Positions 6,286 to 48,406 of a DNA stretch of 64,000 nt are shown piece by piece. Numbering within the stretch: the stretch's first letter is position 1; every line of letters starts with the position of its first letter. The position numbers and the translations under genes are program-made. The DNA comes from Macrostomum lignano. Its lineage: Eukaryota. The notes beneath the pieces are model-generated. The model saw only the letters and a list, made by a program, of their open reading frames with translations, did not search any database and was not told the origin of the DNA. The stretch spans positions 104,912-168,911 of the forward strand of contig NIVC01002491.1 in the NCBI GenBank assembly GCA_002269645.1, in the 5' to 3' direction.

Positions 6286-6464
6286 GTTGAAAGAAACTCG
6301 AGAATGTTAAAGCAATTGAAGTCAATCGAGAAGCTCTATTAAAGCTGATTTTATCCAAGCATTTTTATTCTCTTTCTTATTTAGCACAACAAAGAGGGGC
6401 CTTTGATAACGGCAGTCCGTCAGTAGCGTCAGTTGAGTTGAACACTCAAAAATTCACTCAACTC

Positions 6465-9379: not shown

Positions 9380-10065
9380 GCTAGATGGTCCCTTAGCTCG
9401 ATGGTCCCTTAGCTCGATGGTCCCTTAGCTCGATGGTCCCTTAGCTCGATCGATGGTCCCTTAGCTCGATGGTCCCTTAGCTCGATGGTCCCTTAGCTCG
9501 ATGGTCCCTTAGCTCGATGGTCCCTTAGCTCGATGGTCCCTTAGCTCGATGGTCCCTTAGCTCGATGGTCCCTTAGCTCGATGGTCCCTTAGCTCGATGG
9601 TCCCTTAGCTCGATGGTCCCTTAGCTCGATGGTCCCTTAGCTCGATGGTCCCTTAGCTCGATGGTCCCTTAGCTCGATGGTCCCTTAGCTCGATGGTCCC
9701 TTAGCTCGATGGTCCCTTAGCTCGATGGTCCCTTAGCTCGATGGTCCCTTAGCTCGATGGTCCCTTAGCTCGATGGTCCCTTAGCTCGATGGTCCCTTAG
9801 CTCGATGGTCCCTTAGCTCGATGGTCCCTTAGCTCGATGGTCCCTTAGCTCGATGGTCCCTTAGCTCGATGGTCCCTTAGCTCGATGGTCCCTTAGCTCG
9901 ATGGTCCCTTAGCTCGATGGTCCCTTAGCTCGATGGTCCCTTAGCTCGATGGTCCCTTAGCTCGATGGTCCCTTAGCTCGATGGTCCCTTAGCTCGATGG
10001 TCCCTTAGCTCGATGGTCCCTTAGCTCGATGGTCCCTTAGCTCGATGGTCCCTTAGCTCGATGGT
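9380..10065. repeat. Highly homogeneous 16-bp minisatellite (gatggtcccttagctc), ~43 copies
   Basis: Near-perfect period 16 with one tcga duplication at ~9447. Confidence 0.98.
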
Positions 10066-15950: not shown

Positions 15951-16558
15951 TCTATTTTCTACTTCTGTCCCCAACGCAGACTTCAATTTTAATCATTATT
16001 CCCATTGAAACGGGAAACTTCCCCAACAAATCTCAATAAAAAAGCGGCACTACTCAATGAAAACTAATGAGCGCTCAGGATCATAAATCCTCTTTGAAGT
16101 CTGACTCGCTACGCCATGCAGCCATTTGCTTCTTACCTTTTTTTTTACATTTTCTTCAAAGCCAGTTAAGATTTTTCCTCTGACTTATTTTCATTGCATT
16201 GCCTCTCCCGTTGAGAAGCTCACTGGCTGACTATCGCAACCGATTTTCACTCAACCTCGCTGTTGCCCCCCGCCTGCCTGCCTGACTGAGCGGCATTCGC
16301 CAGCTCGTCCCTGCATCCGTGAGCTGAGCACGGCAACTGGGGAATTTGAGCTGAGCAAGCTTGAGAAGAGCTGCGCTACGTTCGAAAGGGCGGGGCCGCA
16401 GCACAGGGTAGGGTGGGACAAACACGACAGCAAGCCTCACCACCGCTTTGCTCCCGGGGATGCGTTCTGGGTTCCGGCTTTTTAGTGAGCGAGACGATGG
16501 AGAGCTGGATGATGGAGACATTTTTTAATGCGGAAAGCTTAATGCAATTATGAGTATT

Positions 16559-18343
16559 GAGTCTGATGCTTGTGAACTGGTTTGAGATGTGAGTCTGATG
16601 CTTGTGAACTGGTTTGAGATGTGAGTCTGATGCTTGTGAACTGGTTTGAGATGTGAGTCTGATGCTTGTGAACTGGTTTGAGATGTGAGTCTGATGCTTG
16701 TGAACTGGTTTGAGATGTGAGTCTAATGCTTGTGAACTGGTTTGAGATGTGAGTCTGATGCTTGTGAACTGGTTTGAGATGTGAGTCTGATGCTTGTGAA
16801 CTGGTTTGAGATGTGAGTCTAATGCTTGTGAACTGGTTTGAGATGTGAGTCTGATGCTTGTGAACTGGTTTGAGATGTGAGTCTGATGCTTGTGAACTGG
16901 TTTGAGATGTGAGTCTGATGCTTGTGAACTGGTTTGAGATGTGAGTCTGATGCTTGTGAACTGGTTTGAGATGTGAGTCTGATGCTTGTGAACTGGTTTG
17001 AGATGTGAGTCTGATGCTTTTGAACTGGTTTGAGATGTGAGTCTGATGCTTGTGAACTGGTTTGAGATGTGAGTCTGATGCTTGTGAACTGGTTTGAGAT
17101 GTGAGTCTGATGCTTGTGAACTGGTTTGAGATGTGAGTCTGATGCTTGTGAACTGGTTTGAGATGTGAGTCTGATGCTTGTGAACTGGTTTGAGATGTGA
17201 GTCTGATGCTTGTGAACTGGTTTGAGATGTGAGTCTGATGCTTGTGAACTGGTTTGAGATGTGAGTCTGATGCTTGTGAACTGGTTTGAGATGTGAGTCT
17301 GATGCTTTTGAACAGGTTTGAGATGTGAGTCTGATGCTTGTGAACTGGTTTGAGATGTGAGTCTGATGCTTGTGAACTGGTTTGAGATGTGAGTCTGATG
17401 CTTGTGAACTGGTTTGAGATGTGAGTCTGATGCTTGTGAACTGGTTTGAGATGTGAGTCTGATGCTTGTGAACTGGTTTGAGATGTGAGTCTGATGCTTT
17501 TGAACTGGTTTGAGATGTGAGTCTGATGCTTGTGAACTGGTTTGAGATGTGAGTCTGATGCTTGTGAACTGGTTTGAGATGTGAGTCTGATGCTTGTGAA
17601 CTGGTTTGAGATGTGAGTCTGATGCTTGTGAACTGGTTTGAGATGTGAGTCTGATGCTTGTGAACTGGTTTGAGATGTGAGTCTGATGCTTGTGAACTGG
17701 TTTGAGATGTGAGTCTGATGCTTGTGAACTGGTTTGAGATGTGAGTCTGATGCTTGTGAACTGGTTTGAGATGTGAGTCTGATGCTTGTGAACTGGTTTG
17801 AGATGTGAGTCTGATGCTTTTGAACAGGTTTGAGATGTGAGTCTGATGCTTGTGAACTGGTTTGAGATGTGAGTCTGATGCTTGTGAACTGGTTTGAGAT
17901 GTGAGTCTGATGCTTGTGAACTGGTTTGAGATGTGAGTCTGATGCTTGTGAACTGGTTTGAGATGTGAGTCTGATGCTTGTGAACTGGTTTGAGATGTGA
18001 GTCTGATGCTTGTGAACTGGTTTGAGATGTGAGTCTGATGCTTGTGAACTGGTTTGAGATGTGAGTCTGATGCTTGTGAACTGGTTTGAGATGTGAGTCT
18101 GATGCTTGTGAACTGGTTTGAGATGTGAGTCTGATGCTTGTGAACTGGTTTGAGATGTGAGTCTGATGCTTGTGAACTGGTTTGAGATGTGAGTCTGATG
18201 CTTGTGAACTGGTTTGAGATGTGAGTCTGATGCTTGTGAACTGGTTTGAGATGTGAGTCTGATGCTTGTGAACTGGTTTGAGATGTGAGTCTGATGCTTG
18301 TGAACTGGTTTGAGATGTGAGTCTGATGCTTGTGAACTGGTTT
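16559..18343. repeat. 32-bp minisatellite (gagtctgatgcttgtgaactggtttgagatgt), ~56 copies
   Basis: Near-perfect period 32; explains the 656-aa ORF. Confidence 0.98.
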
Positions 18344-23689: not shown

Positions 23690-24333
23690 GGTAGGGGGTC
23701 CAGTGAGCCTGTTTTTGGCTTGTGCAGAAGGGAAAAATGGCAAAAAAGTGGTCTTCTTTCTGTGGCTATAACTTTTGAAATAATCCATTTCCACTGAATT
23801 CCATACACCCTAGCAGCATATGTGCCTAGTAGAATATAAGATCCACAAGTGGCAACAAAGAGCTACAAAATGACACCAAAAACAATAAGATTGGTTCAGG
23901 AATTATAGAGATATACCCTAAATAAGTAAAAGTAATATATCCCAGGAAAAATAGTATTTAACAAATTTTTGCCAATCTCCACTAAAGTGCATTAATTCCA
24001 GCAACACATGTACACATCAGAATACAGGATCAAAAAGTGGAAACAAAATGCTACAAAATGACACCAAAAGCACCAAGATTGGTTGAAAAATAAAAATGTT
24101 ATACAGATTTTACTGCAAAAAACATATTTTTTCCTCCAAAAACAGCACAGTTTCTAGTGTATTTGAGATACAAAAAAATGCATTTTTTCAGAAGAAAAAC
24201 CTCAATAACTTTTTTATTACTGAACCAATTTTCAAAACCTTGGTGTCATTTCAATCAGAACATCCAGATCTACAAAATGGCATAGTTAAAAGTTAAGAAT
24301 TCAGAAAAAAATTTTCTCACTGGACCCCCTACC
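23690..24333. mobile_element. Non-autonomous DNA transposon (MITE, 644 bp), PIF/Harbinger-like
   Basis: Perfect 18-bp TIRs ggtagggggtccagtgag (23690-23707) / ctcactggaccccctacc (24316-24333), TTA on both flanks; internal repeated ctacaaaatgacaccaaaa motifs; no transposase. Confidence 0.85.
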
Positions 24334-26494
24334 TTAGGGTCTAAGCTATATTATATATTATTAGGCCCCATATAGCCATAGTCTAGAATCTAGATCATGC
24401 TGGGTGCACACCTGAATAAAAATTGAATATTTACAAATATAGTGGCCTATATTAAAAATGGAGTGTATGCCCATTCTTATAACTATGCCAATATTATGAC
24501 AATAAAAGATCTTTTTCGATTGTGTAATGAACCTTTTTGGGAGATAATTTGATAAATTTTTTACTTTTTGGCAATATTATTTATAGAAAAGAATTGATAC
24601 TCAAAGATTTTATTAACTATTTTGTTACATACTAAAAAACTAGAAAGCTTGAAATTTATACTTAGAAATGAACTTTTTTCATCTTTTTTTCTACTTCACA
24701 ATAACTTTTTTGCATGATTTTTTAAAGCGCATAATACATCCATGCATAATATTTTCTTAGGTGTGATGCATGCCAATTGTGTATACCTACTTTTGGCATG
24801 CAAGGCTAATGCATACTTAGTTTATTTTAGAGACTCTAGTAAGATTTTTAAAATTAAAAATTGAATTATTGCACTTAATTATATATATCTTATTGAGAAG
24901 TTTAAATAAATATTTTGTTTATAAAAATAGATTTAAGAGTAAAAAAGTTGACTGTTTTGTTGTGATAAATGCTTTGACTTTTAGAGTGTATTTTTCCTAT
25001 AAAGTACTGAAAGTAGGACTTGTAAATGTAGATGCACAATAATTAAAAAATAGTGGTAAAATATAATGCTCTATTGTATTGTTATACCTTTTTATCTTTG
25101 TAGCCAAAATTAGTCAAATCTCTGTATTCCAATTTTTTTGTAGCCAAATTATAAATTAACAAAAAACCCTAATTTTCAAAGGCAAAGACCAAAATGTGAA
25201 GACAAAGCAAAAGCAATTAAACAAAAAGCAAAAACTCTTAGATTTAGGTATGTTTAGTTTGGTACTATAAATATAGATGCATTTTATATGAGATAGCCAA
25301 TATTGTGTTTATTTTTTTAGCCAAAAATATAAAAATTTAAATAAAATAAACCTTTTTTACAAAAAAAATTCTGCTTGATTTATATTGTTACAAGAAATTA
25401 TATATGATGCTCCAAATCTCTATAATCCATAACCATATCTTTGCCAATTGGCAAGATCTCCATAGTTGCAGTCTGTAATCAAATTTTGCTTGAAAAAGTG
25501 CCACCCTAAATTTCCCATAACCATAGCCATAATTATTGTAGAATGCTATAAAATGTAAGTCAAAAAATGTCTAAATGTTTTTAATAGAAAAATATATCAA
25601 AATTAAATTAAGAAAGAAATAATAAAAGTTATGAACAAAACCAAAAACACAATTTTTTGATAAAATAACTTTTAGTGAATATATATATTTTTTTTGGCTA
25701 CAATAATAATTGTCATATGGAGCACCTTTTATTCTTAATATTATACTATACTATACCTTTCAAAAATTTTGTGGCTTACTATTTTTTCTATACATCATAT
25801 TATGCTTTGTTATCTGCTGTCATTTGTTTAAAAGTTTTGAATAATTCATAGGAATTCTAGCCTCCTACAATCCAGATTTTATCACCCCTCCCTAGTTCAT
25901 TAGTGCATATATAAAATTTCTGTGCCAACTTTTTATACATTCTTTCAGAAGCAAGATGTTTTATTAAAGTATGGAAGTGTCATTTTATTTCTATAATTTT
26001 TTTTTTCTTTGTAAGTTGGACATTATTTTTATTTTAGCTTCCTTTTTTAAGTTTTCTTTGATCAATGTCCAGTTATACCATAAATGCAAAAACTGGAAAA
26101 TGGGCCATTTTTGCATACCAACTATATGCTAATATTAAACCCAAAATTATATACACTAAGATTCTTAGTTAAAGGCAAAAATATGCCAGTATTGCTGTAT
26201 TTTCCAACAAAGTCACTTTCCATGGTACATGGTTCTATAGGACCATGATATGTACTATACCACCTTGACTATAATGTATTAATATTAAACTATGCTGACA
26301 AATCTTTCCAATGCTATTGCCTCTTATTCTGTAGAAAGCTTTTGAATCTTGCATCTTTGGTTCCCATCCCCTCTGCCTTAACCCTGCAGGTTATAAAAAA
26401 TCCAATTAGTTGGGGCATTTATTGTTTTTTATTATTACCTAAACTAACTATAGTAATGTTTACAGATATATCTATCTTTAATATTCTATCTAAA

Positions 26495-26565
26495 TATCAT
26501 GATGATAAAATTCTTGACCTGAACTACAAAAACAGTGATGGTTCAAGCTCAACAGGACTGAGAAT
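26495..26565 (+). ncRNA. Box C/D snoRNA candidate (copy 1), guide for 28S rRNA
   Basis: C box ATGATGA 26499-26505, D' CTGA 26519-26522, C' GTGATGG 26535-26541, guide tcaagctcaacagg 26543-26556, D box CTGA 26558-26561; guide complementary to conserved LSU CCUGUUGAGCUUGA. Confidence 0.8.
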
Positions 26566-26670
26566 CTATTCAATTTGTTAACTATCAATTCATTTTAAAA
26601 CCAAACAAGTTGTTACTGCAAACGCCGCATCTTCTATTTGATGAATGCATGCTGATCGAGTTAGCCAATC

Positions 26671-26881
26671 ATGTCTGGTCGTGCCGGTGGTAAAGCTGCC
26701 AGAAAATCTACTGGAAAGCAGCAGAAAAGCAAATCGTCTCGCGCCGGACTAGTTATGCCGGTTGCTAGGGTTCATCGCTACCTGAAACTCGGTCGCTACG
26801 GTAAGAAAGTTAGCGTCGGCGCCAGCGTCTACCTTGCCGCCGTCATGGAGTACCTGGTTGCGGAGGTCAACGAACTAAGCG
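26671..26881 (+). CDS. H2A: Divergent histone H2A variant, exon 1
   Basis: MSGRAGGK...[19 protein letters not shown]...[18 protein letters not shown]; donor G|gtaaga at 26881/26882, phase 1. Confidence 0.93.
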
Positions 26882-27303
26882 GTAAGAGCTCTACTCAAGC
26901 CGTAGAATGTGTAAACGGCTTTTTTGTTATTTTGCATATCATATTAGTTTAGAATGAATGATTGCTACTAAGGGGAATCAGCGCAGCTCTCTATTTTTAT
27001 TAGAGTCAGGGGACCTGTGTGCACCCTGGCGCACTTTAAGTGACACTTAAAGTCACAACCGGCGAGATGCGTTGCTGCCCATTCCGCCGACTCCCCTGAG
27101 CAGGCACACAAGCGCGCGGATGCGTACGCACTTATATTTTAGGCATGAACACTTCACTGTGCCCTGGTGGTGGGCCTCAAGGCCGCGTTAATTGCACAAG
27201 CCGAGATTCCAATTTAGCTCCAAAATTATTGTGATTGCACTTGGAATCGAGCCGCTTAGCAGAGTAGCTTCATTACCCCAGCCCAGTGAACTATTACTAG
27301 TAA

Positions 27304-27373
27304 CTCTATGATGATAAAATTCTAAATCACGGACCTAAGCTCATGACGGTTCAAGCTCAACAGGACTGAAAAA
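27304..27373 (+). ncRNA. Box C/D snoRNA candidate (copy 2), intronic in the H2A gene
   Basis: C box ATGATGA 27308-27314, C' ATGACGG 27343-27349, same guide 27351-27364, D box CTGA 27366-27369; lies ~108 nt upstream of the 3' splice site. Confidence 0.8.
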
Positions 27374-27477
27374 ATGCATTCTTTTTCTCCCATGCGCCAA
27401 TGGTGCTACTTATCAGTAGCAAGTCAAGCTTAGATTTGTTCTCCCCCCCCCGCTCCGCACAAAACGCCAACATGCAG

Positions 27478-27674
27478 GCAACGCTGCCAGGGCTAACAAG
27501 AGGAAGACCGTCACGCCCAGGCACATCATGCTAGGCGTGCGCAACGACGCCGAACTGAACGAACTGTTGAAGCACGTGCACATCAGCTTTGGCGGCGTGC
27601 TGCCCTCTATCCATCCTGTGTTGCTGAAGAAGAAGGGCAGCTTGCCGGCTGTGCCGCAGGGCAAGAGTGGCTAA
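27478..27674 (+). CDS. H2A: Divergent histone H2A variant, exon 2 (joined protein 135 aa)
   Basis: Acceptor atgcag|GC gives [65 protein letters not shown]; phase consistent with exon 1. Confidence 0.93.
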
Positions 27675-29990
27675 GGCCCGAATCCCCGGGTTTTCTTTGA
27701 CTAAATTAACTCATTAATTACAGCGTGGCAGCAGGGCAAAATTATTGCTAAATAGCTACATTTTTCATACTAAAAGTTTGGCCGTTTTTTAATCAAGCAA
27801 ATTTTTATTATTTAGCCAATCTGTCAAATTGAACTGTTTTGTATAAATTTGTTTTTCTCTTTTCAACTGTCAAGTTATGCTGATATACCTTCAGCCATAG
27901 TTGATTAGTACAAATGTAACTGTAAAAGTTGATTGCTGATTAGCTCTCTTAAAATTATGCGATTTTGTCATCGCGGCACTTATTTCTGTTCTGTTCCCCG
28001 TTTTTAGCGCAGTCGGTCATCTCTGTTGTAAAAAATCATTAAATACGCATCATCTGTTGCTGTCAGTCTCCATTTCTCTACATCCTGCACTGCCCTTGTC
28101 TAACTATCTAGCCCGCATCATACTACTAGCAATGAGTAATGCTAGAGCGTTGAAAAGTAAAAAAATACACTACTATATCAAATATAATTTCTCAACTTAG
28201 CGGTGTTAAATATACACGTTTATTAAATGATGTTGTGTTATTGCTGTTTTCTTCATTGTCTCTCTTGAAGTGCGCAGGTGTGTTGTGGAAACCTGAAATA
28301 ATGGGGAATTGAAAAGTTTGTTATTGGTATTGCATTACGACTGGGAATCTCCAATATTATGTATTGTTGACTGGCCGATTTAATCCGATAGCGTTTGAGC
28401 GGGGAAGGTGCAATACGATTTTAGGCGCTTTTTTATTGCGCAATTTGCAACAATTGAGATTAAATATTGCTATTGCAGTCTTCGCATGTCACCTGCTCGC
28501 CCAGCGCTACCGGATCTGTTTTGGTCTGTCAGGCTGGCTATAGTGGAGTAACTCTAATAAGCCGCTGTAATAGTCAAGCTGAAGCTCCGAGCTCTTTGAG
28601 TTTAGCTCTGGGCTCAGCTCGGTCCTACTTATAGGGCTCCTCACGGCGGGCGGCTGTGTGCGCGGCCAGTGCTGTGCAGTTTGGGGGGCCGCGACCGTCG
28701 CCTGACCCTCACCGCCTCATTGTTGGGTCTTGGAGTTCTTCGGGGGGAGAGAGGGAGAGGGTTATGACAGCGGGCTGGGGCTGGGTCAGAACAATGCAGT
28801 GCTCGCTATTATGGCTGCAGGCGATCAGGACTGCATTTTTCTTCTCCGAGCGAGGCAAGCAGACGCGCCTGGCTGAGCACGTCGGAGTGGTGTGGAGGGG
28901 CTGCTTTTGCTGTTGCAGCTGCGTGCCGCCTTAGCGGACCCGCCCAGCCCTGCACCCCCAGGCTAAACACGGGCAGCTCACACACTGTTAGCTGCTTTGT
29001 GCTTCTCTCCGTGTGCTCAGGCATTCTCCAAGAGCTCAAGATTTTTAAGAATGAGATGGAAGGCATATGCACACCGGCGCCGGAGCACCTGGTTGAAGAA
29101 GATTTGACTTGAATAGCCACCGCGGGCAGGCATTGCTTTACAATAATAGTTCAGCAGCCTTTATGGGCATTATTTGTATTAGTTTATTATATAGGTGAGT
29201 CGAATATTTCAGTCACATCAACAGGGGAGGGGGGTTTTAAAGTAGCATGTGGTTGCAGTGAGCTTCATTTTTGGTCTATTGTGTTGATTATAAGCTGGCA
29301 ATTGTGTGGCATATAGTGAGCATATATTAATACTATTTCACCCTCACTCTGCGAATGCAGGCGCATGCTGCAATTTTCGAATATCAAACTAAAAACTTTG
29401 TTGAGCTGCATTCATCTACAAGCAGCTCTCTTACCTCTATTATTATTCAGCTGTATGGTTGAAAACAGCCCAAACTGCAGATGCAATACATATGTATATG
29501 CCATTCGCCACTCTCTGTCCCTCTGTTGGGTGCATTTGCAGTTTTATTCATGCCAATCCTGGCAATTGCAAGTGTTTTTGCTTTCAAAAAAAGTAAACAG
29601 CGGGACGATGCCTCGTCACCCAATTAGTGCAATACTTTTGGGCTACTATGCATTATCTATAGGCCTTTGAAAGTTGTGTAGAGTTTGAATTTATTTGATA
29701 GGAATCCACAACGGCAAATATGCGTCTTAATTGTACATAACATTTTATCTTATCACTTTTCAGTTTCACTCTTTTCCGCACACGCGTATAAACATGCACA
29801 AATCAGTCGCTCCTTAACACAGTCTCGATGGTCTCGCATTATTCCTAAATGTAAGACAAACATTTTTAAATTCGTGTATAATTATTGCAATATCTCATTT
29901 TAATCGTCATAAAAGATAGAGCATTGTATCATTTGCTTTTACTTGGTGAGTTTACTGTCACCTTAGTGCATTGCTTGCTATCTTCTGTCA

Positions 29991-32900
29991 AGCAGATTTA
30001 AGCACTGAGGGCGGAGAGATCGAGGCAGATTCAAGCACTGAGGGCGGAGAGAGGCAGATTCAAGCACTGAGGGTGGAGAGAGGCAGATTCAAGCACTGCA
30101 GGGGGAGCAGAAAGGCAGATTCAAGCACTAAGGGCGGAGAGAGGCAGATTCAAGCACTGAGGGAGAGGCAGATTCAAGCACTGAGGGAGAGGCAGATTCA
30201 AGCACTGAGGGAGAGGCAGATTCAAGCACTGAGGGAGAGGCAGATTCAAGCACTGAGGGAGAGGCAGATTCAAGCACTGAGGGAGAGGCAGATTCAAGCA
30301 CTGAGGGTGGAGAGAGACAGATTCAAGCACTGAGGGCGGAGAGAGGCAGATTAAAGCACTGAGGGCGGAGAGAGGCAGATTCAAGCACTGAGGGGAGGCA
30401 GATGCAAGCATTGAGGGTGGAGAGAGGCAGATTCAAGCACTGAGGGTGGAGAGAAGCAGATTCAAGCACTGAGGAAGCAGCAGATTCAAGCACTGAGGGT
30501 GGAGACAGGCAGATTCAAGCACTGAGGGTGGAGAGAGGCAGATTCAAGCACTGAGGGCGGAGAGAGGCAGATTCAAGCACTGAGGGAGAGGCAGATTCAA
30601 GCACTGAGGGGAGGCAGATTCAAGCATTGAGGGTGGAGAGAGGCAGATTCAAGCACTGAGGGAGAGGCAGATTCAAGCACTGAGGGCGGAGAGAGGCAGA
30701 TTCAAGCACTGAGGGTGGAGAGAAGCAGATTCAAGCACTGAGGGAGAGGCAGATTCAAGCACTGAGGGAGAGGCAGATTCAAGCACTGAGGGAGAGGCAG
30801 ATTCAAGCACTGAGGGAGAGGCAGATTCAAGCACTGAGGGAGGGGAGATAGGCAGATTAAAGCACTGAGGGAGGGGAGAGAGGCAGATTCAAGCACTGAG
30901 GGCGGAGAGAGGCAGATTCAAGCACTGATGGTGGAGAGAGGCAGATTCAAGCACTGAGGGAGGGGAGAGAGGCAGATTCAAGCACTGTGGGAGCGGAGAG
31001 AGGCAGATTCAAGCACTGAGGGAGCAGCAGATTCAAGCACTGAGGGAGCGGAGAGAGGCAGATTCAAGCACTGAGGGTGGAGAGAGGCAGATTCAAGCAC
31101 TGAGGGAGCGGCAGATTCAAGCACGGAGGGAGAGGCAGATTCAAGCACTGAGGGAGCGGAGAGAGGCAGATTCAAGCACTGAGGGAGCGGAGAGAGGCAG
31201 ATTCAAGCACTGAGGGTGGAGAGAGGCAGATTCAAGCACTGAGGGAGCGGCAGATTCAAGCACTGAGGGCGGAGAGAGGCAGATTCAAGCACTGAGGGAG
31301 CGGAGAGAGGCAGATTCAAGCACTGAGGGCGGAGAGAGGCAGATTCAAGCACTGAGGGTGGAGAGAGGCAGATTCAAGCACTGAGGGTGGAGAGAGGCAG
31401 ATTCAAGCACTGAGGGAGAGGCAGATTCAAGCACTGAGGGAGAGGCAGATTCAAGCACTGAGGGAGCAGCAGATTCAAGCACTGAGGGAGCGGAGAGAGG
31501 CAGATTCAAGCACTGAGGGAGGGGAGAGAGGCAGATTCAAGCACTGAGGGAGGGGAGAGAGGCAGATTCAAGCACTGAGGGCGGAGAGAGGCAGATTCAA
31601 GCACTGAGGGAGGGGAGAGAGGCAGATTCAAGCACTGAGGGCGGAGAGAGGCAGATTCAAGCACTGAGGGAGGGGAGAGAGGCAGATTCAAGCACTGAGG
31701 GTGGAGAGAGGCAGATTCAAGCACTGAGGGAGCGGCAGATTCAAGCACGGAGGGAGAGGCAGATTCAAGCACTGAGGGAGCGGAGAGAGGCAGATTCAAG
31801 CACTGAGGGAGCGGAGAGAGGCAGATTCAAGCACTGAGGGTGGAGAGAGGCAGTTTCAAGCACTGAGGGAGCGGCAGATTCAAGCACTGAGGGAGCGGCA
31901 GTTTCAAGCACTGAGGGAGCGGCAGATTCAAGCACTGAGGGCGGAGAGAGGCAGATTCAAGCACTGAGGGAGGGGAGAGAGGCAGATTCAAGCACTGAGG
32001 GAGGGGAGAGAGGCAGATTCAAGCACTGAGGGCGGAGAGAGGCAGATTCAAGCACTGAGGGTGGAGAGAGGCAGATTCAAGCACTGAGGGTGGAGAGAGG
32101 CAGATTCAAGCACTGAGGGAGGGGAGAGAGGCAGATTCAAGCACTGAGGGAGGGGAGAGAGGCAGATTCAAGCACTGAGGGCGGAGAGAGGCAGATTCAA
32201 GCACTGAGGGTGGAGAGAGGCAGATTCAAGCACTGAGGGTGGAGAGAGGCAGATTCAAGCACTGAGGGAGAGGCAGATTCAAGCACTGAGGGAGCGGAGA
32301 GAGGCAGATTCAAGCACTGAGGGTGGAGAGAGGCAGATTCAAGCACTGAGGGAGAGGCAGATTCAAGCACTGAGGGAGCAGCAGATTCAAGCACTGAGGG
32401 AGCGGAGAGAGGCAGATTCAAGCACTGAGGGAGCGGAGAGAGGCAGATTCAAGCACTGAGGGAGCGGAGAGAGGCAGATTCAAGCACTGAGGGAGCGGAG
32501 AGAGGCAGATTCAAGCACTGAGGGCGGAGAGAGGCAGATTCAAGCACTGAGGGAGCAGCAGATTCAAGCACTGAGGGAGCGGAGAGAGGCAGATTCAAGC
32601 ACTGAGGGAGCGGAGAGAGGCAGATTCAAGCACTGAGGGAGCGGAGAGAGGCAGATTCAAGCACTGAGGGTGGAGAGAGGCAGATTCAAGCACTGAGGGA
32701 GCGGAGAGAGGCAGATTCAAGCACTGAGGGAGCGGAGAGAGGCAGATTCAAGCACTGAGGGCGGAGAGAGGCAGATTCAAGCACTGAGGGTGGAGAGAGG
32801 CAGATTCAAGCACTGAGGGAGGGGAGAGAGGCAGATTCAAGCACTGAGGGAGGGAGAGAGGCAGATTCAAGCACTGAGGGAGCGGAGAGAGGCAGATTCA

Positions 32901-35900
32901 AGCACTGTGGGAGCGGAGAGAGGCAGATTCAAGCACTGAGGGAGCAGCAGATTCAAGCACTGAGGGAGAGGCAGATTCAAGCACTGAGGGAGCGGAGAGA
33001 GGCAGATTCAAGCACTGAGGGTGGAGAGAGGCAGATTCAAGCACTGAGGGTGGAGAGAGGCAGATTCAAGCACTGAGGGAGCGGCAGATTCAAGCACTGA
33101 GGGAGAGGCAGATTCAAGCACTGAGGGAGGGGAGATAGGCAGATTCAAGCACTGAGGGAGGGGAGAGAGGCAGATTCAAGCACTGAGGGTGGAGAGAGGC
33201 AGATTCAAGCACTGAGGGAGCGGCAGATTCAAGCACGGAGGGAGAGGCAGATTCAAGCACTGAGGGAGCGGAGAGAGGCAGATTCAAGCACTGAGGGAGC
33301 GGAGAGAGGCAGATTCAAGCACTGAGGGAGCAGAAAGGCAGATTCAAGCACTGAGGGAGCAGAAAGGCAGATTCAAGCACTGAGGGAGAGGCAGATTCAA
33401 GCACTGAGGGAGCGGAGAGAGGCAGATTCAAGCACTGAGGGAGCGGAGAGAGGCAGATTCAAGCACTGAGGGAGCGGAGAGAGGCAGATTCAAGCACTGA
33501 GGGAGCGGAGAGAGGCAGATTCAAGCACTGAGGGTGGAGAGAGGCAGATTCAAGCACTGAGGGAGCGGCAGATTCAAGCACTGAGGGAGAGGCAGATTCA
33601 AGCACTGAGGGAGCGGAGAGAGGCAGATTCAAGCACTGAGGGAGCGGAGAGAGGCAGATTCAAGCACTGAGGGAGGGAGAGAGGCAGATTCAAGCACTGA
33701 GGGAGCAGCAGATTCAAGCACTGAGGGAGAGGCAGATTCAAGCACTGAGGGCGGAGAGAGGCAGATTCAAGCACTGAGGGAGGGGAGAGAGGCAGATTCA
33801 AGCACTGAGGGAGCGGAGAGAGGCAGATTCAAGCACTGAGGGAGCGGAGAGAGGCAGATTCAAGCACTGAGGGAGAGGCAGATTCAAGCACTGAGGGAGC
33901 GGAGAGAGGCAGATTCAAGCACTGAGGGTGGAGAGAGGCAGATTCAAGCACTGAGGGTGGAGAGAGGCAGATTCAAGCACTGAGGGAGCGGCAGATTCAA
34001 GCACGAGGGAGAGGCAGATTCAAGCACTGAGGGAGCGGAGAGAGGCAGATTCAAGCACTGAGGGAGCGGAGAGAGGCAGATTCAAGCACTGAGGGTGGAG
34101 AGAGGCAGATTCAAGCACTGAGGGAGCGGCAGATTCAAGCACGGAGGGAGAGGCAGATTCAAGCACTGAGGGAGCGGAGAGAGGCAGATTCAAGCACTGA
34201 GGGAGCGGAGAGAGGCAGATTCAAGCACTGAGGGTGGAGAGAGGCAGTTTCAAGCACTGAGGGAGCGGCAGATTCAAGCACTGAGGGAGCGGCAGTTTCA
34301 AGCACTGAGGGAGCGGCAGATTCAAGCACTGAGGGCGGAGAGAGGCAGATTCAAGCACTGAGGGTGGAGAGAGGCAGATTCAAGCACTGAGGGAGGGAGA
34401 GAGGCAGATTCAAGCACTGAGGGCGGAGAGAGGCAGATTCAAGCACTGAGGGTGGAGAGAGGCAGATTCAAGCACTGAGGGTGGAGAGAGGCAGATTCAA
34501 GCACTGAGGGAGGGGAGAGAGGCAGATTCAAGCACTGAGGGAGGGGAGAGAGGCAGATTCAAGCACTGAGGGCGGAGAGAGGCAGATTCAAGCACTGAGG
34601 GTGGAGAGAGGCAGATTCAAGCACTGAGGGTGGAGAGAGGCAGATTCAAGCACTGAGGGAGAGGCAGATTCAAGCACTGAGGGAGCGGAGAGAGGCAGAT
34701 TCAAGCACTGAGGGTGGAGAGAGGCAGATTCAAGCACTGAGGGAGAGGCAGATTCAAGCACTGAGGGAGCGGCAGATTCAAGCACGGAGGGAGAGGCAGA
34801 TTCAAGCACTGAGGGAGCGGAGAGAGGCAGATTCAAGCACTGAGGGAGCGGAGAGAGGCAGATTCAAGCACTGAGGGTGGAGAGAGGCAGATTCAAGCAC
34901 TGAGGGAGCGGCAGATTCAAGCACTGAGGGAGCGGCAGTTTCAAGCACTGAGGGAGCGGCAGATTCAAGCACTGAGGGCGAGAGAGGCAGATTCAAGCAC
35001 TGAGGGAGGAGAGAGGCAGATTCAAGCACTGAGGGAGGGAGAGAGGCAGATTCAAGCACTGAGGGCGGAGAGAGGCAGATTCAAGCACTGAGGGTGGAGA
35101 GAGGCAGATTCAAGCACTGAGGGTGGAGAGAGGCAGATTCAAGCACTGAGGGAGGGAGAGAGGCAGATTCAAGCACTGAGGGAGGGAGAGAGGCAGATTC
35201 AAGCACTGAGGGCGGAGAGAGGCAGATTCAAGCACTGAGGGTGGAGAGAGGCAGATTCAAGCACTGAGGGTGGAGAGAGGCAGATTCAAGCACTGAGGGA
35301 GAGGCAGATTCAAGCACTGAGGGAGCGGAGAGAGGCAGATTCAAGCACTGAGGGTGGAGAGAGGCAGATTCAAGCACTGAGGGAGAGGCAGATTCAAGCA
35401 CTGAGGGAGCAGCAGATTCAAGCACTGAGGGAGCGGAGAGAGGCAGATTCAAGCACTGAGGGAGCGGAGAGAGGCGGAGAGAGGCAGATTCAAGCACTGA
35501 GGGAGCGGAGAGAGGCAGATTCAAGCACTGAGGGAGCGGAGAGAGGCAGATTCAAGCACTGAGGGCGGAGAGAGGCAGATTCAAGCACTGAGGGAGCAGC
35601 AGATTCAAGCACTGAGGGAGCGGAGAGAGGCAGATTCAAGCACTGAGGGAGCGGAGAGAGGCAGATTCAAGCACTGAGGGAGCGGAGAGAGGCAGATTCA
35701 AGCACTGAGGGGGAGAGGCAGATTCAAGCACTGAGGGAGCGGAGAGAGGCAGATTCAAGCACTGAGGGAGCGGAGAGAGGCAGATTCAAGCACTGAGGGC
35801 GGAGAGAGGCAGATTCAAGCACTGAGGGTGGAGAGAGGCAGATTCAAGCACTGAGGGAGGGGAGAGAGGCAGATTCAAGCACTGAGGGAGGGGAGAGAGG

Positions 35901-38900
35901 CAGATTCAAGCACTGAGGGAGCGGAGAGAGGCAGATTCAAGCACTGTGGGAGCGGAGAGAGGCAGATTCAAGCACTGAGGGAGCAGCAGATTCAAGCACT
36001 GAGGGAGAGGCAGATTCAAGCACTGAGGGAGCGGAGAGAGGCAGATTCAAGCACTGAGGGGGAGAGAGGCAGATTCAAGCACTGAGGGTGGAGAGAGGCA
36101 GATTCAAGCACTGAGGGAGCGGCAGATTCAAGCACTGAGGGAGAGGCAGATTCAAGCACTGAGGGAGGGGAGAGGCAGATTCAAGCACTGAGGGAGGGGA
36201 GAGAGGCAGATTCAAGCACTGAGGGTGGAGAGAGGCAGATTCAAGCACTGAGGGAGCGGCAGATTCAAGCACGAGGGAGAGGCAGATTCAAGCACTGAGG
36301 GAGCGGAGAGAGGCAGATTCAAGCACTGAGGGAGCGGAGAGAGGCAGATTCAAGCACTGAGGGAGCAGAGAGGCAGATTCAAGCACTGAGGGAGCAGAGG
36401 CAGATTCAAGCACTGAGGGAGAGAGCAGATTCAAGCACTGAGGGAGCGGAGAGAGGCAGATTCAAGCACTGAGGGAGCGGAGAGAGGCAGATTCAAGCAC
36501 TGAGGGAGCGGAGAGAGGCAGATTCAAGCACTGAGGGAGCGGAGAGAGGCAGATTCAAGCACTGAGGGGGAGAGAGGCAGATTCAAGCACTGAGGGAGCG
36601 GCAGATTCAAGCACTGAGGGAGAGGCAGATTCAAGCACTGAGGGAGCGGAGAGAGGCAGATTCAAGCACTGAGGGAGCGGAGAGAGGCAGATTCAAGCAC
36701 TGAGGGAGGGGAGAGAGGCAGATTCAAGCACTGAGGGAGAGCAGATTCAAGCACTGAGGGAGAGGCAGATTCAAGCACTGAGGGCGGAGAGAGGCAGATT
36801 CAAGCACTGAGGGAGGGAGAGAGGCAGATTCAAGCACTGAGGGAGCGGAGAGAGGCAGATTCAAGCACTGAGGGAGCGGAGAGAGGCAGATTCAAGCACT
36901 GAGGGAGAGGCAGATTCAAGCACTGAGGGCGGAGAGAGGCAGATTCAAGCACTGAGGGTGGAGAGAGGCAGATTCAAGCACTGAGGGTGGAGAGAGGCAG
37001 ATTCAAGCACTGAGGGAGCGGCAGATTCAAGCACGAGGGAGGGAGAGGCAGATTCAAGCACTGAGGGAGCGGAGAGAGGCAGATTCAAGCACTGAGGGAG
37101 CGAGAGAGGCAGATTCAAGCACTGAGGGTGGAGAGAGGCAGATTCAAGCACTGAGGGAGCGGCAGATTCAAGCACGGAGGGAGAGGCAGATTCAAGCACT
37201 GAGGGAGCGGAGAGAGGCAGATTCAAGCACTGAGGGAGGAGAGAGGCAGATTCAAGCACTGAGGGTGGAGAGAGGCAGATTCAAGCACTGAGGGAGCGGC
37301 AGATTCAAGCACTGAGGGAGCGGCAGATTCAAGCACTGAGGGCGGAGAGAGGCAGATTCAAGCACTGAGGGAGGGGAGAGAGGCAGATTCAAGCACTGAG
37401 GGAGGGGAGAGAGGCAGATTCAAGCACTGAGGGAGAGAGGCAGATTCAAGCACTGAGGGTGGAGAGAGGCAGATTCAAGCACTGAGGGTGGAGAGAGGCA
37501 GATTCAAGCACTGAGGGAGGGAGAGAGGCAGATTCAAGCACTGAGGGAGGGAGAGAGGCAGATTCAAGCACTGAGGGGGAGAGAGGCAGATTCAAGCACT
37601 GAGGGAGAGAGGCAGATTCAAGCACTGAGGGTGGAGAGGGCAGATTCAAGCACTGAGGGAGAGAGGCAGATTCAAGCACTGAGGGAGAGAGAGGCAGATT
37701 CAAGCACTGAGGGTGGAGAGAGGCAGATTCAAGCACTGAGGGAGAGGCAGATTCAAGCACTGAGGGAGCGGCAGATTCAAGCACTGAGGGAGAGGCAGAT
37801 TCAAGCACTGAGGGAGCGGAGAGAGGCAGATTCAAGCACTGAGGGAGCGGAGAGAGGCAGATTCAAGCACTGAGGGTGGAGAGAGGCAGTTCAAGCACTG
37901 AGGGAGCGGCAGATTCAAGCACTGAGGGAGCGGCAGTTTCAAGCACTGAGGGAGCGGCAGATTCAAGCACTGAGGGCGGAGAGAGGCAGATTCAAGCACT
38001 GAGGGAGGGAGAGAGGCAGATTCAAGCACTGAGGGAGGGGAGAGAGGCAGATTCAAGCACTGAGGGCGGAGAGAGGCAGATTCAAGCACTGAGGGTGGAG
38101 AGAGGCAGATTCAAGCACTGAGGGTGGAGAGAGGCAGATTCAAGCACTGAGGGGGGAGAGAGGCAGATTCAAGCACTGAGGGAGGGGAGAGAGGCAGATT
38201 CAAGCACTGAGGGCGGAGAGAGGCAGATTCAAGCACTGAGGGTGGAGAGAGGCAGATTCAAGCACTGAGGGTGGAGAGAGGCAGATTCAAGCACTGAGGG
38301 AGAGGCAGATTCAAGCACTGAGGGAGCGGAGAGAGGCAGATTCAAGCACTGAGGGTGGAGAGAGGCAGATTCAAGCACTGAGGGAGAGGCAGATTCAAGC
38401 ACTGAGGGAGCAGCAGATTCAAGCACTGAGGGAGCGGAGAGAGGCAGATTCAAGCACTGAGGGAGCGGAGAGAGGCAGATTCAAGCACTGAGGGAGCGGA
38501 GAGAGGCAGATTCAAGCACTGAGGGAGCGGAGAGAGGCAGATTCAAGCACTGAGGGCGGAGAGAGGCAGATTCAAGCACTGAGGGAGCAGCAGATTCAAG
38601 CACTGAGGGAGCGGAGAGAGGCAGATTCAAGCACTGAGGGAGCGGAGAGAGGCAGATTCAAGCACTGAGGGAGCGGAGAGAGGCAGATTCAAGCACTGAG
38701 GGTGGAGAGAGGCAGATTCAAGCACTGAGGGAGCGGAGAGAGGCAGATTCAAGCACTGAGGGAGCGGAGAGAGGCAGATTCAAGCACTGAGGGCGGAGAG
38801 AGGCAGATTCAAGCACTGAGGGTGGAGAGAGGCAGATTCAAGCACTGAGGGAGGGAGAGAGGCAGATTCAAGCACTGAGGGAGGGAGAGAGGCAGATTCA

Positions 38901-41900
38901 AGCACTGAGGGAGCGGAGAGAGGCAGATTCAAGCACTGGGGAGCGGAGAGAGGCAGATTCAAGCACTGAGGGAGCAGCAGATTCAAGCACTGAGGGAGAG
39001 GCAGATTCAAGCACTGAGGGAGCGGAGAGAGGCAGATTCAAGCACTGAGGGTGGAGAGAGGCAGATTCAAGCACTGAGGGTGGAGAGAGGCAGATTCAAG
39101 CACTGAGGGAGCGGCAGATTCAAGCACTGAGGGAGAGGCAGATTCAAGCACTGAGGGAGGGGAGATAGGCAGATTCAAGCACTGAGGGAGGGAGAGAGGC
39201 AGATTCAAGCACTGAGGGTGGAGAGAGGCAGATTCAAGCACTGAGGGAGCGGCAGATTCAAGCACGAGGGAGAGGCAGATTCAAGCACTGAGGGAGCGGA
39301 GAGAGGCAGATTCAAGCACTGAGGGAGCGGAGAGAGGCAGATTCAAGCACTGAGGGAGCAGAAAGGCAGATTCAAGCACTGAGGGAGCAGAAAGGCAGAT
39401 TCAAGCACTGAGGGAGAGGCAGATTCAAGCACTGAGGGAGCGGAGAGAGGCAGATTCAAGCACTGAGGGAGCGGAGAGAGGCAGATTCAAGCACTGAGGG
39501 AGCGGAGAGAGGCAGATTCAAGCACTGAGGGAGCAGCAGATTCAAGCACTGAGGGAGAGGCAGATTCAAGCACTGAGGGCGGAGAGAGGCAGATTCAAGC
39601 ACTGAGGGAGGGCAGATTCAAGCACTGAGGGAGCGGAGAGAGGCAGATTCAAGCACTGAGGGAGCGGAGAGAGGCAGATTCAAGCACTGAGGGCGGAGAG
39701 GCAGATTCAAGCACTGAGGGAGCGGAGAGAGGCAGATTCAAGCACTGAGGGAGGAGAGAGGCAGATTCAAGCACTGAGGGTGGAGAGAGGCAGATTCAAG
39801 CACTGAGGGAGCGGCAGATTCAAGCACTGGAGCGGAGAGGCAGATTCAAGCACTGAGGGAGCGGAGAGAGGCAGATTCAAGCACTGAGGGAGCGGAGAGA
39901 GGCAGATTCAAGCACTGAGGGAGAGAGGCAGATTCAAGCACTGAGGGAGCGGCAGATTCAAGCACTGAGGGAGAGGGCAGATTCAAGCACTGAGGGAGAG
40001 AGGCAGATTCAAGCACTGAGGGAGCGGAGAGAGGCAGATTCAAGCACTGAGGGTGGAGAGAGGCAGATTCAAGCACTGAGGGAGCGGCAGATTCAAGCAC
40101 TGAGGGAGCGGCAGATTCAAGCACTGAGGGCGGAGAGGCAGATTCAAGCACTGAGGGAGAGAGGCAGATTCAAGCACTGAGGGAGGGAGAGAGGCAGATT
40201 CAAGCACTGAGGGAGGAGAGAGGCAGATTCAAGCACTGAGGGAGAGAGGCAGATTCAAGCACTGAGGGTGGAGAGAGGCAGATTCAAGCACTGAGGGAGG
40301 GAGAGAGGCAGATTCAAGCACTGAGGGAGGGAGAGAGGCAGATTCAAGCACTGAGGGAGGGAGAGAGGCAGATTCAAGCACTGAGGGGGAGAGAGGCAGA
40401 TTCAAGCACTGAGGGTGGAGAGAGGCAGATTCAAGCACTGAGGGAGAGAGGCAGATTCAAGCACTGAGGGAGAGAGAGGCAGATTCAAGCACTGAGGGTG
40501 GAGAGAGGCAGATTCAAGCACTGAGGGAGAGAGGCAGATTCAAGCACTGAGGGAGAGGGCAGATTCAAGCACTGAGGGAGAGGCAGATTCAAGCACTGAG
40601 GGAGAGGCAGATTCAAGCACTGAGGGAGCGGAGAGAGGCAGATTCAAGCACTGAGGGAGGAGAGAGGCAGATTCAAGCACTGAGGGAGCGGCAGATTCAA
40701 GCACTGAGGGAGCGGCAGATTCAAGCACTGAGGGAGCGGCAGATTCAAGCACTGAGGGAGGAGAGAGGCAGATTCAAGCACTGAGGGAGGGAGAGAGGCA
40801 GATTCAAGCACTGAGGGAGGGAGAGAGGCAGATTCAAGCACTGAGGGCGGAGAGAGGCAGATTCAAGCACTGAGGGTGGAGAGAGGCAGATTCAAGCACT
40901 GAGGGTGGAGAGAGGCAGATTCAAGCACTGAGGGAGGGAGAGAGGCAGATTCAAGCACTGAGGGAGGGAGAGAGGCAGATTCAAGCACTGAGGGCGGAGA
41001 GAGGCAGATTCAAGCACTGAGGGTGGAGAGAGGCAGATTCAAGCACTGAGGGTGGAGAGAGGCAGATTCAAGCACTGAGGGAGAGAGGCAGATTCAAGCA
41101 CTGAGGGAGAGAGGCAGATTCAAGCACTGAGGGAGAGAGAGGCAGATTCAAGCACTGAGGGAGAGGCAGATTCAAGCACTGAGGGAGCAGAGCAGATTCA
41201 AGCACTGAGGGAGCGGAGAGAGGCAGATTCAAGCACTGAGGGAGCAGATTCAAGCACTGAGGGAGGCAGATTCAAGCACTGAGGGAGCGGAGAGAGGCAG
41301 ATTCAAGCACTGAGGGAGGGAGAGAGGCAGATTCAAGCACTGAGGGCGGAGAGAGGCAGATTCAAGCACTGAGGGAGCAGCAGATTCAAGCACTGAGGGA
41401 GCGGAGAGAGGCAGATTCAAGCACTGAGGGAGCGGAGAGAGGCAGATTCAAGCACTGAGGGTAGAGAGAGGCAGATTCAAGCACTGAGGGGAGAGAGGCA
41501 GATTCAAGCACTGAGGGAGCGGAGAGAGGCAGATTCAAGCACTGAGCGGAGAGAGGCAGATTCAAGCACTGAGGGCGGAGAGAGGCAGATTCAAGCACTG
41601 AGGGTGGAGAGAGGCAGATTCAAGCACTGAGGGAGGGAGAGAGGCAGATTCAAGCACTGAGGGAGCGGAGAGAGGCAGATTCAAGCACTGAGGGAGCGGA
41701 GAGAGGCAGATTCAAGCACTGAGGGAGCGGAGAGAGGCAGATTCAAGCACTGAGGGAGCAGAGAGGGAGCAGATTCAAGCACTGAGGGAGCGGAGAGAGG
41801 CAGATTCAAGCACTGAGGGTGGAGAGAGGCAGATTCAAGCACTGAGGGTGGAGAGAGGCAGATTCAAGCACTGAGGGAGCGGCAGATTCAAGCACTGAGG

Positions 41901-44900
41901 GAGAGGCAGATTCAAGCACTGAGGGAGGGGAGATAGGCAGATTCAAGCACTGAGGGAGGGGAGAGAGGCAGATTCAAGCACTGAGGGTGGAGAGAGGCAG
42001 ATTCAAGCACTGAGGGAGCGGCAGATTCAAGCACGGAGGGAGAGGCAGATTCAAGCACTGAGGGAGCGGAGAGAGGCAGATTCAAGCACTGAGGGAGCGG
42101 AGAGAGGCAGATTCAAGCACTGAGGGAGCAGAAGGCAGATTCAAGCACTGAGGGAGCAGAAAGGCAGATTCAAGCACTGAGGGAGAGGCAGATTCAAGCA
42201 CTGAGGGAGCGGAGAGAGGCAGATTCAAGCACTGAGGGAGCGGAGAGAGGCAGATTCAAGCACTGAGGGAGCGGAGAGAGGCAGATTCAAGCACTGAGGG
42301 AGCGGAGAGAGGCAGATTCAAGCACTGAGGGTGGAGAGAGGCAGATTCAAGCACTGAGGGAGCGGCAGATTCAAGCACTGAGGGAGAGGCAGATTCAAGC
42401 ACTGAGGGAGCGGAGAGAGGCAGATTCAAGCACTGAGGGAGCGGAGAGAGGCAGATTCAAGCACTGAGGGAGGGGAGAGAGGCAGATTCAAGCACTGAGG
42501 GAGCAGCAGATTCAAGCACTGAGGGAGAGGCAGATTCAAGCACTGAGGGCGGAGAGAGGCAGATTCAAGCACTGAGGGAGGGGAGAGAGGCAGATTCAAG
42601 CACTGAGGGAGCGGAGAGAGGCAGATTCAAGCACTGAGGGAGCGGAGAGAGGCAGATTCAAGCACTGAGGGAGAGGCAGATTCAAGCACTGAGGGAGCGG
42701 AGAGAGGCAGATTCAAGCACTGAGGGTGGAGAGAGGCAGATTCAAGCACTGAGGGTGGAGAGAGGCAGATTCAAGCACTGAGGGAGCGGCAGATTCAAGC
42801 ACGGAGGGAGAGGCAGATTCAAGCACTGAGGGAGCGGAGAGAGGCAGATTCAAGCACTGAGGGAGCGGAGAGAGGCAGATTCAAGCACTGAGGGTGGAGA
42901 GAGGCAGATTCAAGCACTGAGGGAGCGGCAGATTCAAGCACGGAGGGAGAGGCAGATTCAAGCACTGAGGGAGCGGAGAGAGGCAGATTCAAGCACTGAG
43001 GGAGCGGAGAGAGGCAGATTCAAGCACTGAGGGAGCGGAGAGAGGCAGATTCAAGCACTGAGGGAGCGGAGAGAGGCAGATTCAAGCACTGAGGGCGGAG
43101 AGAGGCAGATTCAAGCACTGAGGGAGCAGCAGATTCAAGCACTGAGGGAGCGGAGAGAGGCAGATTCAAGCACTGAGGGAGCGGAGAGAGGCAGATTCAA
43201 GCACTGAGGGAGCGGAGAGAGGCAGATTCAAGCACTGAGGGAGGGGAGAGAGGCAGATTCAAGCACTGAGGGCGGAGAGAGGCAGATTCAAGCACTGAGG
43301 GTGGAGAGAGGCAGATTCAAGCACTGAGGGTGGAGAGAGGCAGATTCAAGCACTGAGGGAGGGAGAGAGGCAGATTCAAGCACTGAGGGAGGGGAGAGAG
43401 GCAGATTCAAGCACTGAGGGCGGAGAGAGGCAGATTCAAGCACTGAGGGTGGAGAGAGGCAGATTCAAGCACTGAGGGTGGAGAGAGGCAGATTCAAGCA
43501 CTGAGGGAGAGGCAGATTCAAGCACTGAGGGAGCGGAGAGAGGCAGATTCAAGCACTGAGGGTGGAGAGAGGCAGATTCAAGCACTGAGGGAGAGGCAGA
43601 TTCAAGCACTGAGGGAGCAGCAGATTCAAGCACTGAGGGAGCGGAGAGAGGCAGATTCAAGCACTGAGGGAGCGGAGAGAGGCAGATTCAAGCACTGAGG
43701 GAGCGGAGAGAGGCAGATTCAAGCACTGAGGGAGCGGAGAGAGGCAGATTCAAGCACTGAGGGCGGAGAGAGGCAGATTCAAGCACTGAGGGAGCAGCAG
43801 ATTCAAGCACTGAGGGAGCGGAGAGAGGCAGATTCAAGCACTGAGGGAGCGGAGAGAGGCAGATTCAAGCACTGAGGGAGCGGAGAGAGGCAGATTCAAG
43901 CACTGAGGGTGGAGAGAGGCAGATTCAAGCACTGAGGGAGCGGAGAGAGGCAGATTCAAGCACTGAGGGAGCGGAGAGAGGCAGATTCAAGCACTGAGGG
44001 CGGAGAGAGGCAGATTCAAGCACTGAGGGTGGAGAGAGGCAGATTCAAGCACTGAGGGAGGGGAGAGAGGCAGATTCAAGCACTGAGGGAGGGGAGAGAG
44101 GCAGATTCAAGCACTGAGGGAGCGGAGAGAGGCAGATTCAAGCACTGTGGGAGCGGAGAGAGGCAGATTCAAGCACTGAGGGAGCAGCAGATTCAAGCAC
44201 TGAGGGAGAGGCAGATTCAAGCACTGAGGGAGCGGAGAGAGGCAGATTCAAGCACTGAGGGTGGAGAGAGGCAGATTCAAGCACTGAGGGTGGAGAGAGG
44301 CAGATTCAAGCACTGAGGGAGCGGCAGATTCAAGCACTGAGGGAGAGGCAGATTCAAGCACTGAGGGAGGGGAGATAGGCAGATTCAAGCACTGAGGGAG
44401 GGGAGAGAGGCAGATTCAAGCACTGAGGGTGGAGAGAGGCAGATTCAAGCACTGAGGGAGCGGCAGATTCAAGCACGGAGGGAGAGGCAGATTCAAGCAC
44501 TGAGGGAGCGGAGAGAGGCAGATTCAAGCACTGAGGGAGCGGAGAGAGGCAGATTCAAGCACTGAGGGAGCAGAAAGGCAGATTCAAGCACTGAGGGAGC
44601 AGAAAGGCAGATTCAAGCACTGAGGGAGAGGCAGATTCAAGCACTGAGGGAGCGGAGAGAGGCAGATTCAAGCACTGAGGGAGCGGAGAGAGGCAGATTC
44701 AAGCACTGAGGGAGCGGAGAGAGGCAGATTCAAGCACTGAGGGAGCGGAGAGAGGCAGATTCAAGCACTGAGGGTGGAGAGAGGCAGATTCAAGCACTGA
44801 GGGAGCGGCAGATTCAAGCACTGAGGGAGAGGCAGATTCAAGCACTGAGGGAGCGGAGAGAGGCAGATTCAAGCACTGAGGGAGCGGAGAGAGGCAGATT

Positions 44901-48381: not shown

Positions 48382-48406
48382 TATCATCGCCGCGCCTCTC
48401 GCGAAG

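Follow-up and report, generated by a model that had tools for sequence, protein, structure and literature searches.

Two short segments of Macrostomum lignano DNA, one upstream of a histone gene and one inside its intron, begin and end with the same letters and are unrelated in between. The question that this locus raises is whether the two segments encode functional guide RNAs, and if they do, which nucleotide these RNAs are aimed at and how they would be made. The window, i.e. the whole stretch of 64,000 nucleotides analysed here, belongs to contig NIVC01002491.1 of M. lignano, which it matched with 100% identity over the 6-kb stretch compared (24001-30000). All coordinates refer to the window.

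Architecture of the two copies

Both copies lie on the forward strand. Copy 1 (26499-26561, 63 nt) has the order ATGATGA TAAAATTCTTGAC CTGA ACTACAAAAACA GTGATGG TTCAAGCTCAACAGGA CTGA, corresponding to box C (26499-26505), the C-to-D' spacer TAAAATTCTTGAC (26506-26518), box D' (26519-26522), box C' (26535-26541), the D guide region (26542-26557, with a 14-nt antisense element at 26543-26556) and box D (26558-26561). Copy 2 (27308-27369, 62 nt) is intronic and has the order ATGATGA TAAAATTCT AAATCACGGACCTAAGCTC ATGACGG TTCAAGCTCAACAGGA CTGA. Here, box C (27308-27314) is followed by a 9-mer shared with copy 1 (27315-27323), by two degenerate candidates for box D' (CGGA at 27330-27333 or CTAA at 27335-27338), by a degenerate box C' (ATGACGG, 27343-27349), by the antisense element (27351-27364) and by box D (27366-27369).

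The first 16 nt of the two copies (ATGATGA plus TAAAATTCT) are identical, and so are the last 22 nt (GGTTCAAGCTCAACAGGACTGA, guide plus box D), but no alignment was found between their 24-25-nt interiors or between their 30-nt flanks. The original prediction had described two segments alike only at both ends, and its coordinates, its blocks and the unrelated middle were all confirmed. It had also placed copy 1 upstream of the ATG, which is correct, at a distance of 110 nt, which has to be changed to 109 nt for the spacer to the ATG (26671). Its view that conservation is limited to the boxes and the guide agrees with the interiors and flanks that cannot be aligned; the 9 nt after box C are kept as well. 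These 9 nt (UAAAAUUCU; 26506-26514 and 27315-27323) are identical in the two copies, the remainder of the spacer being wholly diverged, and they may serve an accessory pairing or have a lineage-specific target.

Both copies have the terminal boxes and the antisense element expected of a box C/D RNA. The boxes AUGAUGA and CUGA are perfect and stand about 55 nt apart (expected: RUGAUGA and CUGA at 50-100 nt). The antisense element forms 14 contiguous Watson-Crick pairs with LSU rRNA and ends 2 nt before box D (expected: at least 10 nt, with the end 1-2 nt upstream of box D or D' and the target at the fifth position). The internal boxes of copy 1 are good (CUGA, UGAUGG), and copy 2 has degenerate candidates only (CGGA or CUAA; UGACGG). 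A terminal stem of 4-5 bp was present in neither copy, as 1-2 pairs can be formed at most, and no terminal or external stem was found in the flanks of 6-25 nt, where duplex energies were no better than those of shuffled sequences. Since many bona fide C/D RNAs have no terminal stem, its absence weighs only weakly against membership in the class. Folding of the whole RNAs gave no better energies than shuffles for either copy; such a lack of stable self-structure is expected for C/D RNAs and fits the assignment.

Seven box C...box D pairs were detected on both strands of the window (128 kb). We then scanned for 12-mers complementary to conserved rRNA and placed 1-3 nt before box D, and of the seven pairs, only these two had such a 12-mer. 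Five other antisense 12-mers in the window were rejected, as they had no boxes.

With Rfam, no match at gathering thresholds was obtained in the whole window, and the permissive scans gave sub-threshold matches to C/D families only. In the Infernal/Rfam comparison, which the original prediction had named as a check, no family therefore reached its gathering score for either copy. Judged by their boxes and guide, the two copies are previously unannotated genes of the well-known C/D class that fall into no described family. The original prediction of a box C/D snoRNA pair is borne out by the canonical boxes and by the guide adjoining box D, and we consider it quite probable that copies 1 and 2 are paralogous box C/D guide RNAs aimed at one and the same G of LSU rRNA.

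The predicted target of the D guide

The 14-nt guide TCAAGCTCAACAGG is perfectly complementary to 5'-CCUGUUGAGCUUGA-3' of LSU rRNA, at positions 2412-2425 of the Rfam LSU model. This complementarity had been predicted for the 14 nt before box D; it is real, but the element does not touch the box, as one A separates it from CTGA. Read backwards from box D, the nucleotides are A, G, G, A and C. It is this C, number five of the guide, that pairs with the G of CCUG, and the predicted D+5 target is thus the same G in spite of the intervening A.

The predicted location in domain V of eukaryotic LSU rRNA was likewise right. We fetched 120 metagenomic contigs with GACCCTGTTGAGCTTGAC, and the two that were scanned with Rfam proved to be complete rDNA units. 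In these, GACCCTGTTGAGCTTGAC lies at positions 2409-2426 of RF02543, in a run of conserved consensus letters, although the target G itself is in lower case in the Rfam consensus, i.e. less conserved. The target in M. lignano is predicted from this pan-eukaryotic conservation. By our own alignment, the E. coli counterpart of the target G would be G2067 of helix 74, where domain V begins.

To place the target G in the published modification maps, we determined which numbering of this G puts every published modified position on the right letter, using as reference the conserved sequence around the target from one rDNA contig. For the yeast list, G2409 was the only fit, and for the Arabidopsis list (8 published Nm sites, Wu et al.), it was G2410. 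Two numberings passed the letters for Drosophila (G2720 and G2788) and for human in the new numbering (G3913 and G3985); G2788 and G3913 were chosen, as they match the offset at the sites common with yeast. Yeast Gm2288 (snR75/U15), our first candidate for the target, was ruled out by this test, the target being yeast G2409.

The antisense element upstream of box D is the only guide that could be assigned. Neither the regions upstream of the D' candidates nor the shared 9-mer had a complement in the 120 eukaryotic rDNA contigs when as many as 2 mismatches and 2 G-U pairs were tolerated, and even the commonest match of this search, GTTACGACTTTTA, carries 2 mismatches. Its letters are those of the strand antisense to the 18S 3' end. 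Judged against conserved rRNA, no working second guide is apparent between box C and box C'.

Methylation of the equivalent nucleotide in other organisms

In Arabidopsis 25S rRNA, Gm2410 is a mapped Nm that was assigned to the D' guide of SnoR29 (Wu et al.); Azevedo-Favory et al. list Gm2410 as mapped, with the guide not found. A review cites the equivalent Gm2412 for tomato and tobacco on the basis of cryo-EM structures, has Gm2252 of Ostreococcus as a prediction, and leaves the human and yeast columns blank. As Gm2410 is mapped in Arabidopsis and guided by a snoRNA, the target G is a proven substrate of C/D RNAs.

No Nm equivalent to the target was present in the published yeast and human maps. 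In the Drosophila map, no entry falls between Gm2774 and Gm3152, hence none at the G2788 equivalent, and in the Dictyostelium table, the equivalent position is empty. No rRNA paper came up in text searches for Gm2409, Gm2399, Gm3892 and Gm3913. The original prediction had called the 28S site conserved. This is true of its sequence in the eukaryotes sampled, but not in general of its methylation, which is mapped in plants, is lacking in the yeast, human, Drosophila and Dictyostelium data, and is thus known from the green lineage only.

Relationship to described C/D families

SnoR29 of Arabidopsis is likened to the M. lignano copies by its target: the same rRNA nucleotide, the equivalent of Gm2410, is predicted for both, and the unique numbering fit to G2410 makes the M. 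lignano guide a predicted functional equivalent of the SnoR29 D' guide. The plant RNA uses its D' guide for this site, whereas the M. lignano copies would use the D guide. SnoR29 also guides Gm2392, and Um2411 neighbours its Gm2410 site. Because plants and flatworms are very distant, an independent origin of the two guides is likely.

Another plant family, RF00360 (snoZ107_R87), holds UUCAAGCUCAACAG in its consensus, which is the same antisense element with 14 of 14 positions matched. Its match to copy 2 was partial and reached 10.9 bits, far from the gathering score of 50, and within the plant RNA, the element belongs to the 5' half (model positions 25-38 of 117). As a common antisense element is dictated by a common target, it does not show common descent with RF00360.

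For copy 1, the Rfam scans gave DdR1 with 21.1 bits and SNORD36/U36 (RF00049; yeast snR47) with 20.7 bits, both of them weak class-level matches. SNORD36 is the best full-length resemblance of copy 1 at the class level, below its gathering score of 30, and copy 2 did not match it. The similarity comes with the stretch after box C of copy 1, UAAAAUUCUUGAC before CUGA, which resembles the U36 D' guide, GAAUUUCUUCAC before CUGA. Aligned by hand with what we take to be the U36 target, copy 1 has 3 mismatches, one of which adjoins the methylation position, and a mismatch-tolerant scan of conserved rRNA revealed no target for this U36-like stretch. The D guide of SNORD36 is unrelated to that of copy 1. 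Finally, snR75 of yeast and U15 of human and Arabidopsis, C/D RNAs as well, are likewise aimed at a G of the conserved LSU core, but their Gm2288 lies 121 nt upstream of the target G, and the M. lignano copies do not belong with them.

Paralogous loci and the age of the pair

The unit of an H2A gene and two snoRNA copies is present at three loci of the assembly: in the window, on NIVC01001291.1 and on NIVC01001135.1. The latter two are 96.5-97.6% identical to the locus in the window, and both snoRNA copies are kept in them. Hidden polyploidy is known in M. lignano, and three near-identical loci fit it. When the three loci were aligned, the snoRNAs showed 2 variable columns out of 126 and the remaining non-coding sequence 49 out of 857 (one-sided p = 0.03), with none out of 412 in the exons. 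One of the two variable snoRNA columns is a difference in the length of an A-run just past box D, which leaves one real change, G to A at 26517 in the C-to-D' spacer of copy 1.

Between copy 1 and copy 2, everything except the boxes, the guide and the 9 nt is saturated with differences, which speaks for an old duplication and for constraint on the parts that a guide RNA needs. As far as sequences can tell, the pattern of the paralogues points to an old duplication under selection.

It is rather unlikely that only one copy is functional and the other a silent or decaying duplicate that arose, for example, by retroposition or segmental copying. The degenerate C'/D' boxes of copy 2, the lack of an evident intron context for copy 1 and the missing terminal stem of both would suit such a duplicate. 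However, both copies have a perfect box C, a perfect box D and the 22-nt 3' block amid interiors and flanks that have diverged to saturation; a neutral copy would have lost the boxes and the block. In addition, both copies were kept at all three paralogous loci. It is hardly credible that chance or a cis-regulatory repeat of the H2A gene accounts for the shared blocks and that they are no RNA genes. With 3 mismatches tolerated, the window still contains the 22-mer exactly twice, and none of 100 dinucleotide-preserving shuffles contained it; moreover, the blocks fall precisely on the C/D box architecture and on a perfect 14-nt antisense match to rRNA in the right register.

The host of copy 2 is a flatworm-type H2A gene

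The H2A gene BOX15_Mlig005952g1 is on the same strand as both copies. It consists of exon 1 (26671-26881), a single intron (26882-27477; GTAAGA...CAG, phase 1, 596 nt) and exon 2 including the TAA stop codon (27478-27674), and it spans positions 6001-7004 of the extracted locus (L003). The joined exons encode a protein of 135 amino acids that is 100% identical to the annotated M. lignano BOX15_Mlig005952g1. Copy 2, on the sense strand, starts 426 nt past the 5' splice site, and 108 nt separate its end from the 3' splice site. The proposal that it lies within the intron of a histone gene is thus correct, as there is a single GT..AG intron and the spliced product is the annotated protein.

The protein is indeed an H2A, with 46 bits for the histone fold (PF00125) and 52 bits for the H2A C-terminal domain (PF16211). 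Among the best 60 matches to solved structures, canonical H2A and H2A.X ranked first and neither H2A.Z nor macroH2A was listed, and orthologues with 73-82% identity were found in flatworms only. From the nearest H2A/H2A.X structures, the relatives restricted to flatworms and the intron, we conclude that the host is, by sequence, a divergent, intron-containing H2A of a flatworm type.

The original prediction had made conservation in related species one of its tests. No such conservation was found in the Schistosoma (L005-L007) and Paragonimus (L008) orthologues, which contained neither the guide nor a canonical box C...box D candidate. Thus, the association with H2A is not general in flatworms. 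Contigs L004 and L129-L132 are intronless, probably cDNA, and therefore uninformative about conservation of the host. Beside a Schistosoma H2A gene, an antisense 12-mer followed by CTGA was rejected as a chance match, having no box C.

The intron has a GC-rich core with short inverted repeats (26980-27270), the rest of the intron and its surroundings being AT-rich. This core is unique in the window and has no Rfam match. The differences among the paralogous loci are mostly in the 5' part of the intron (26882-27307), the GC-rich core included.

Possible routes to the two RNAs

Debranching and exonucleolytic trimming of introns is the usual route to animal snoRNAs, and copy 2 would most likely be freed from the spliced H2A intron in this way. 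Copy 1 would probably come from the same Pol II unit (from a leader, an outron or an unannotated intron), or else from a promoter of its own. Each RNA would assemble with Snu13, Nop56, Nop58 and fibrillarin on its C/D motif; the D guide would then pair with 28S pre-rRNA, and fibrillarin would 2'-O-methylate the nucleotide opposite the fifth guide position upstream of box D, namely the G of CCUG.

Upstream of copy 1, the leader region (26384-26465, forward strand) has several motifs recognised by sequence only: an acceptor-like CTGCAG (26384-26389), a TATA-like TATAAAAA (26392-26399), which is TATTAAAA in the paralogues, a donor-like GTAATG (26453-26458) and an acceptor-like TTACAG (26460-26465). 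In M. lignano, about 30% of the genes undergo SL trans-splicing, with a trans acceptor [T/C]TNCAG, and the cis donor and acceptor are GT[G/A]AG and CAG, respectively (PMC8629364). Between copy 1 and the ATG, neither CAG nor [T/C]TNCAG was found; the stretch contains only a weak caAG (26608-26609) and ttAG (26663-26664). Repeat DNA lies upstream of copy 1, and no same-strand gene was recognised nearby.

That copy 1 derives from the outron of an SL trans-spliced H2A transcript, from an unspliced leader or from its own promoter has, in our estimate, about an even chance. The proportion of trans-spliced genes speaks for this origin, as do the position of the TATA-like element about 100 nt upstream of copy 1 and the repeat DNA upstream with no same-strand gene close by. 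Yet copy 1 is not followed by a canonical trans-splice acceptor, the TATA-like motif differs in the paralogues, and no paper devoted mainly to outron-derived snoRNAs came up in a text search. Within this group, the outron, the unspliced leader and a separate transcription unit are on a par.

The original prediction had suggested that copy 1 may lie in an unannotated intron of the H2A 5'-UTR, from which it would be made by splicing. Copy 1 is indeed on the H2A strand within a short distance of the ATG, the donor-like GTAATG precedes it, and one snoRNA per intron is the usual arrangement in animals. However, no good acceptor is present between copy 1 and the ATG, and the good acceptor-like motifs (26384-26389 and 26460-26465) are upstream of copy 1. 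As the acceptor motifs are upstream and not downstream, a 5'-UTR intron is possible but not favoured, and we prefer an outron, a leader or a separate promoter as the source of copy 1.

A side observation concerns the sequence just before the ATG (26660-26673). The M. lignano spliced leader ends in ATG (PMC8629364), and were ttAG (26663-26664) the trans acceptor, CCAATC would put this ATG in frame with the H2A start. This ttAG does not match the published acceptor motif, so the observation is only a lead.

Significance

The predicted Nm site would lie in the functional core of the large subunit. As a wider proposal, which we regard as rather doubtful and make only tentatively, a Gm in domain V of 28S rRNA (helix 74; Arabidopsis Gm2410, yeast G2409, human G3913), near the peptidyl-transferase centre and the tunnel entrance and so far mapped in the green lineage only, may be installed in M. 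lignano by a flatworm-specific snoRNA pair that had an origin separate from the plant guide's and is transcribed together with a flatworm-specific H2A gene, one of the two RNAs being released from a leader or outron and not from a cis-intron. If confirmed, this would be another lineage-specific, probably convergent, placement of an rRNA methylation. A host from a histone family and a copy outside a recognisable intron are mildly unusual, and copy 1, in an animal with trans-splicing, offers a concrete case for how non-intronic snoRNAs are made. The understanding of how C/D snoRNAs work is unchanged by these genes. As a text search found no snoRNA catalogue for M. lignano, the two genes would be useful annotations for this model organism of regeneration.

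Surroundings of the locus

The H2A gene stands alone among minisatellite arrays. Most of the window (1-20600 and 48200-59200) is a patchwork of unrelated arrays with units of 16-43 nt, such as that at 16558-18343 (32-nt unit, 99% matches); further arrays are at 3814-4924, 5440-6285, 9379-10065, 49038-50100 and 57980-59177. ORFs at 21.9-22.3 kb, suspected to be a retroelement fragment, had no Pfam match.

About 2.3 kb downstream of the H2A gene begins a 15-kb minisatellite (29992-45172) with a unit of about 29-31 nt (GCAGATTCAAGCACTGAGGGGGGAGAGAG), approximately 537 copies, 88% matches and a strong, constant GC and AT skew. At the corresponding place in the paralogous locus on NIVC01001135.1, about 2 kb downstream, there is an alpha-mannosidase gene. 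Finally, the window contains an internal telomere-like array (45763-46395), a variant of (CCCTAA)n with the consensus AACCCTAATCCCTAACCC, about 35 copies and 94% matches.
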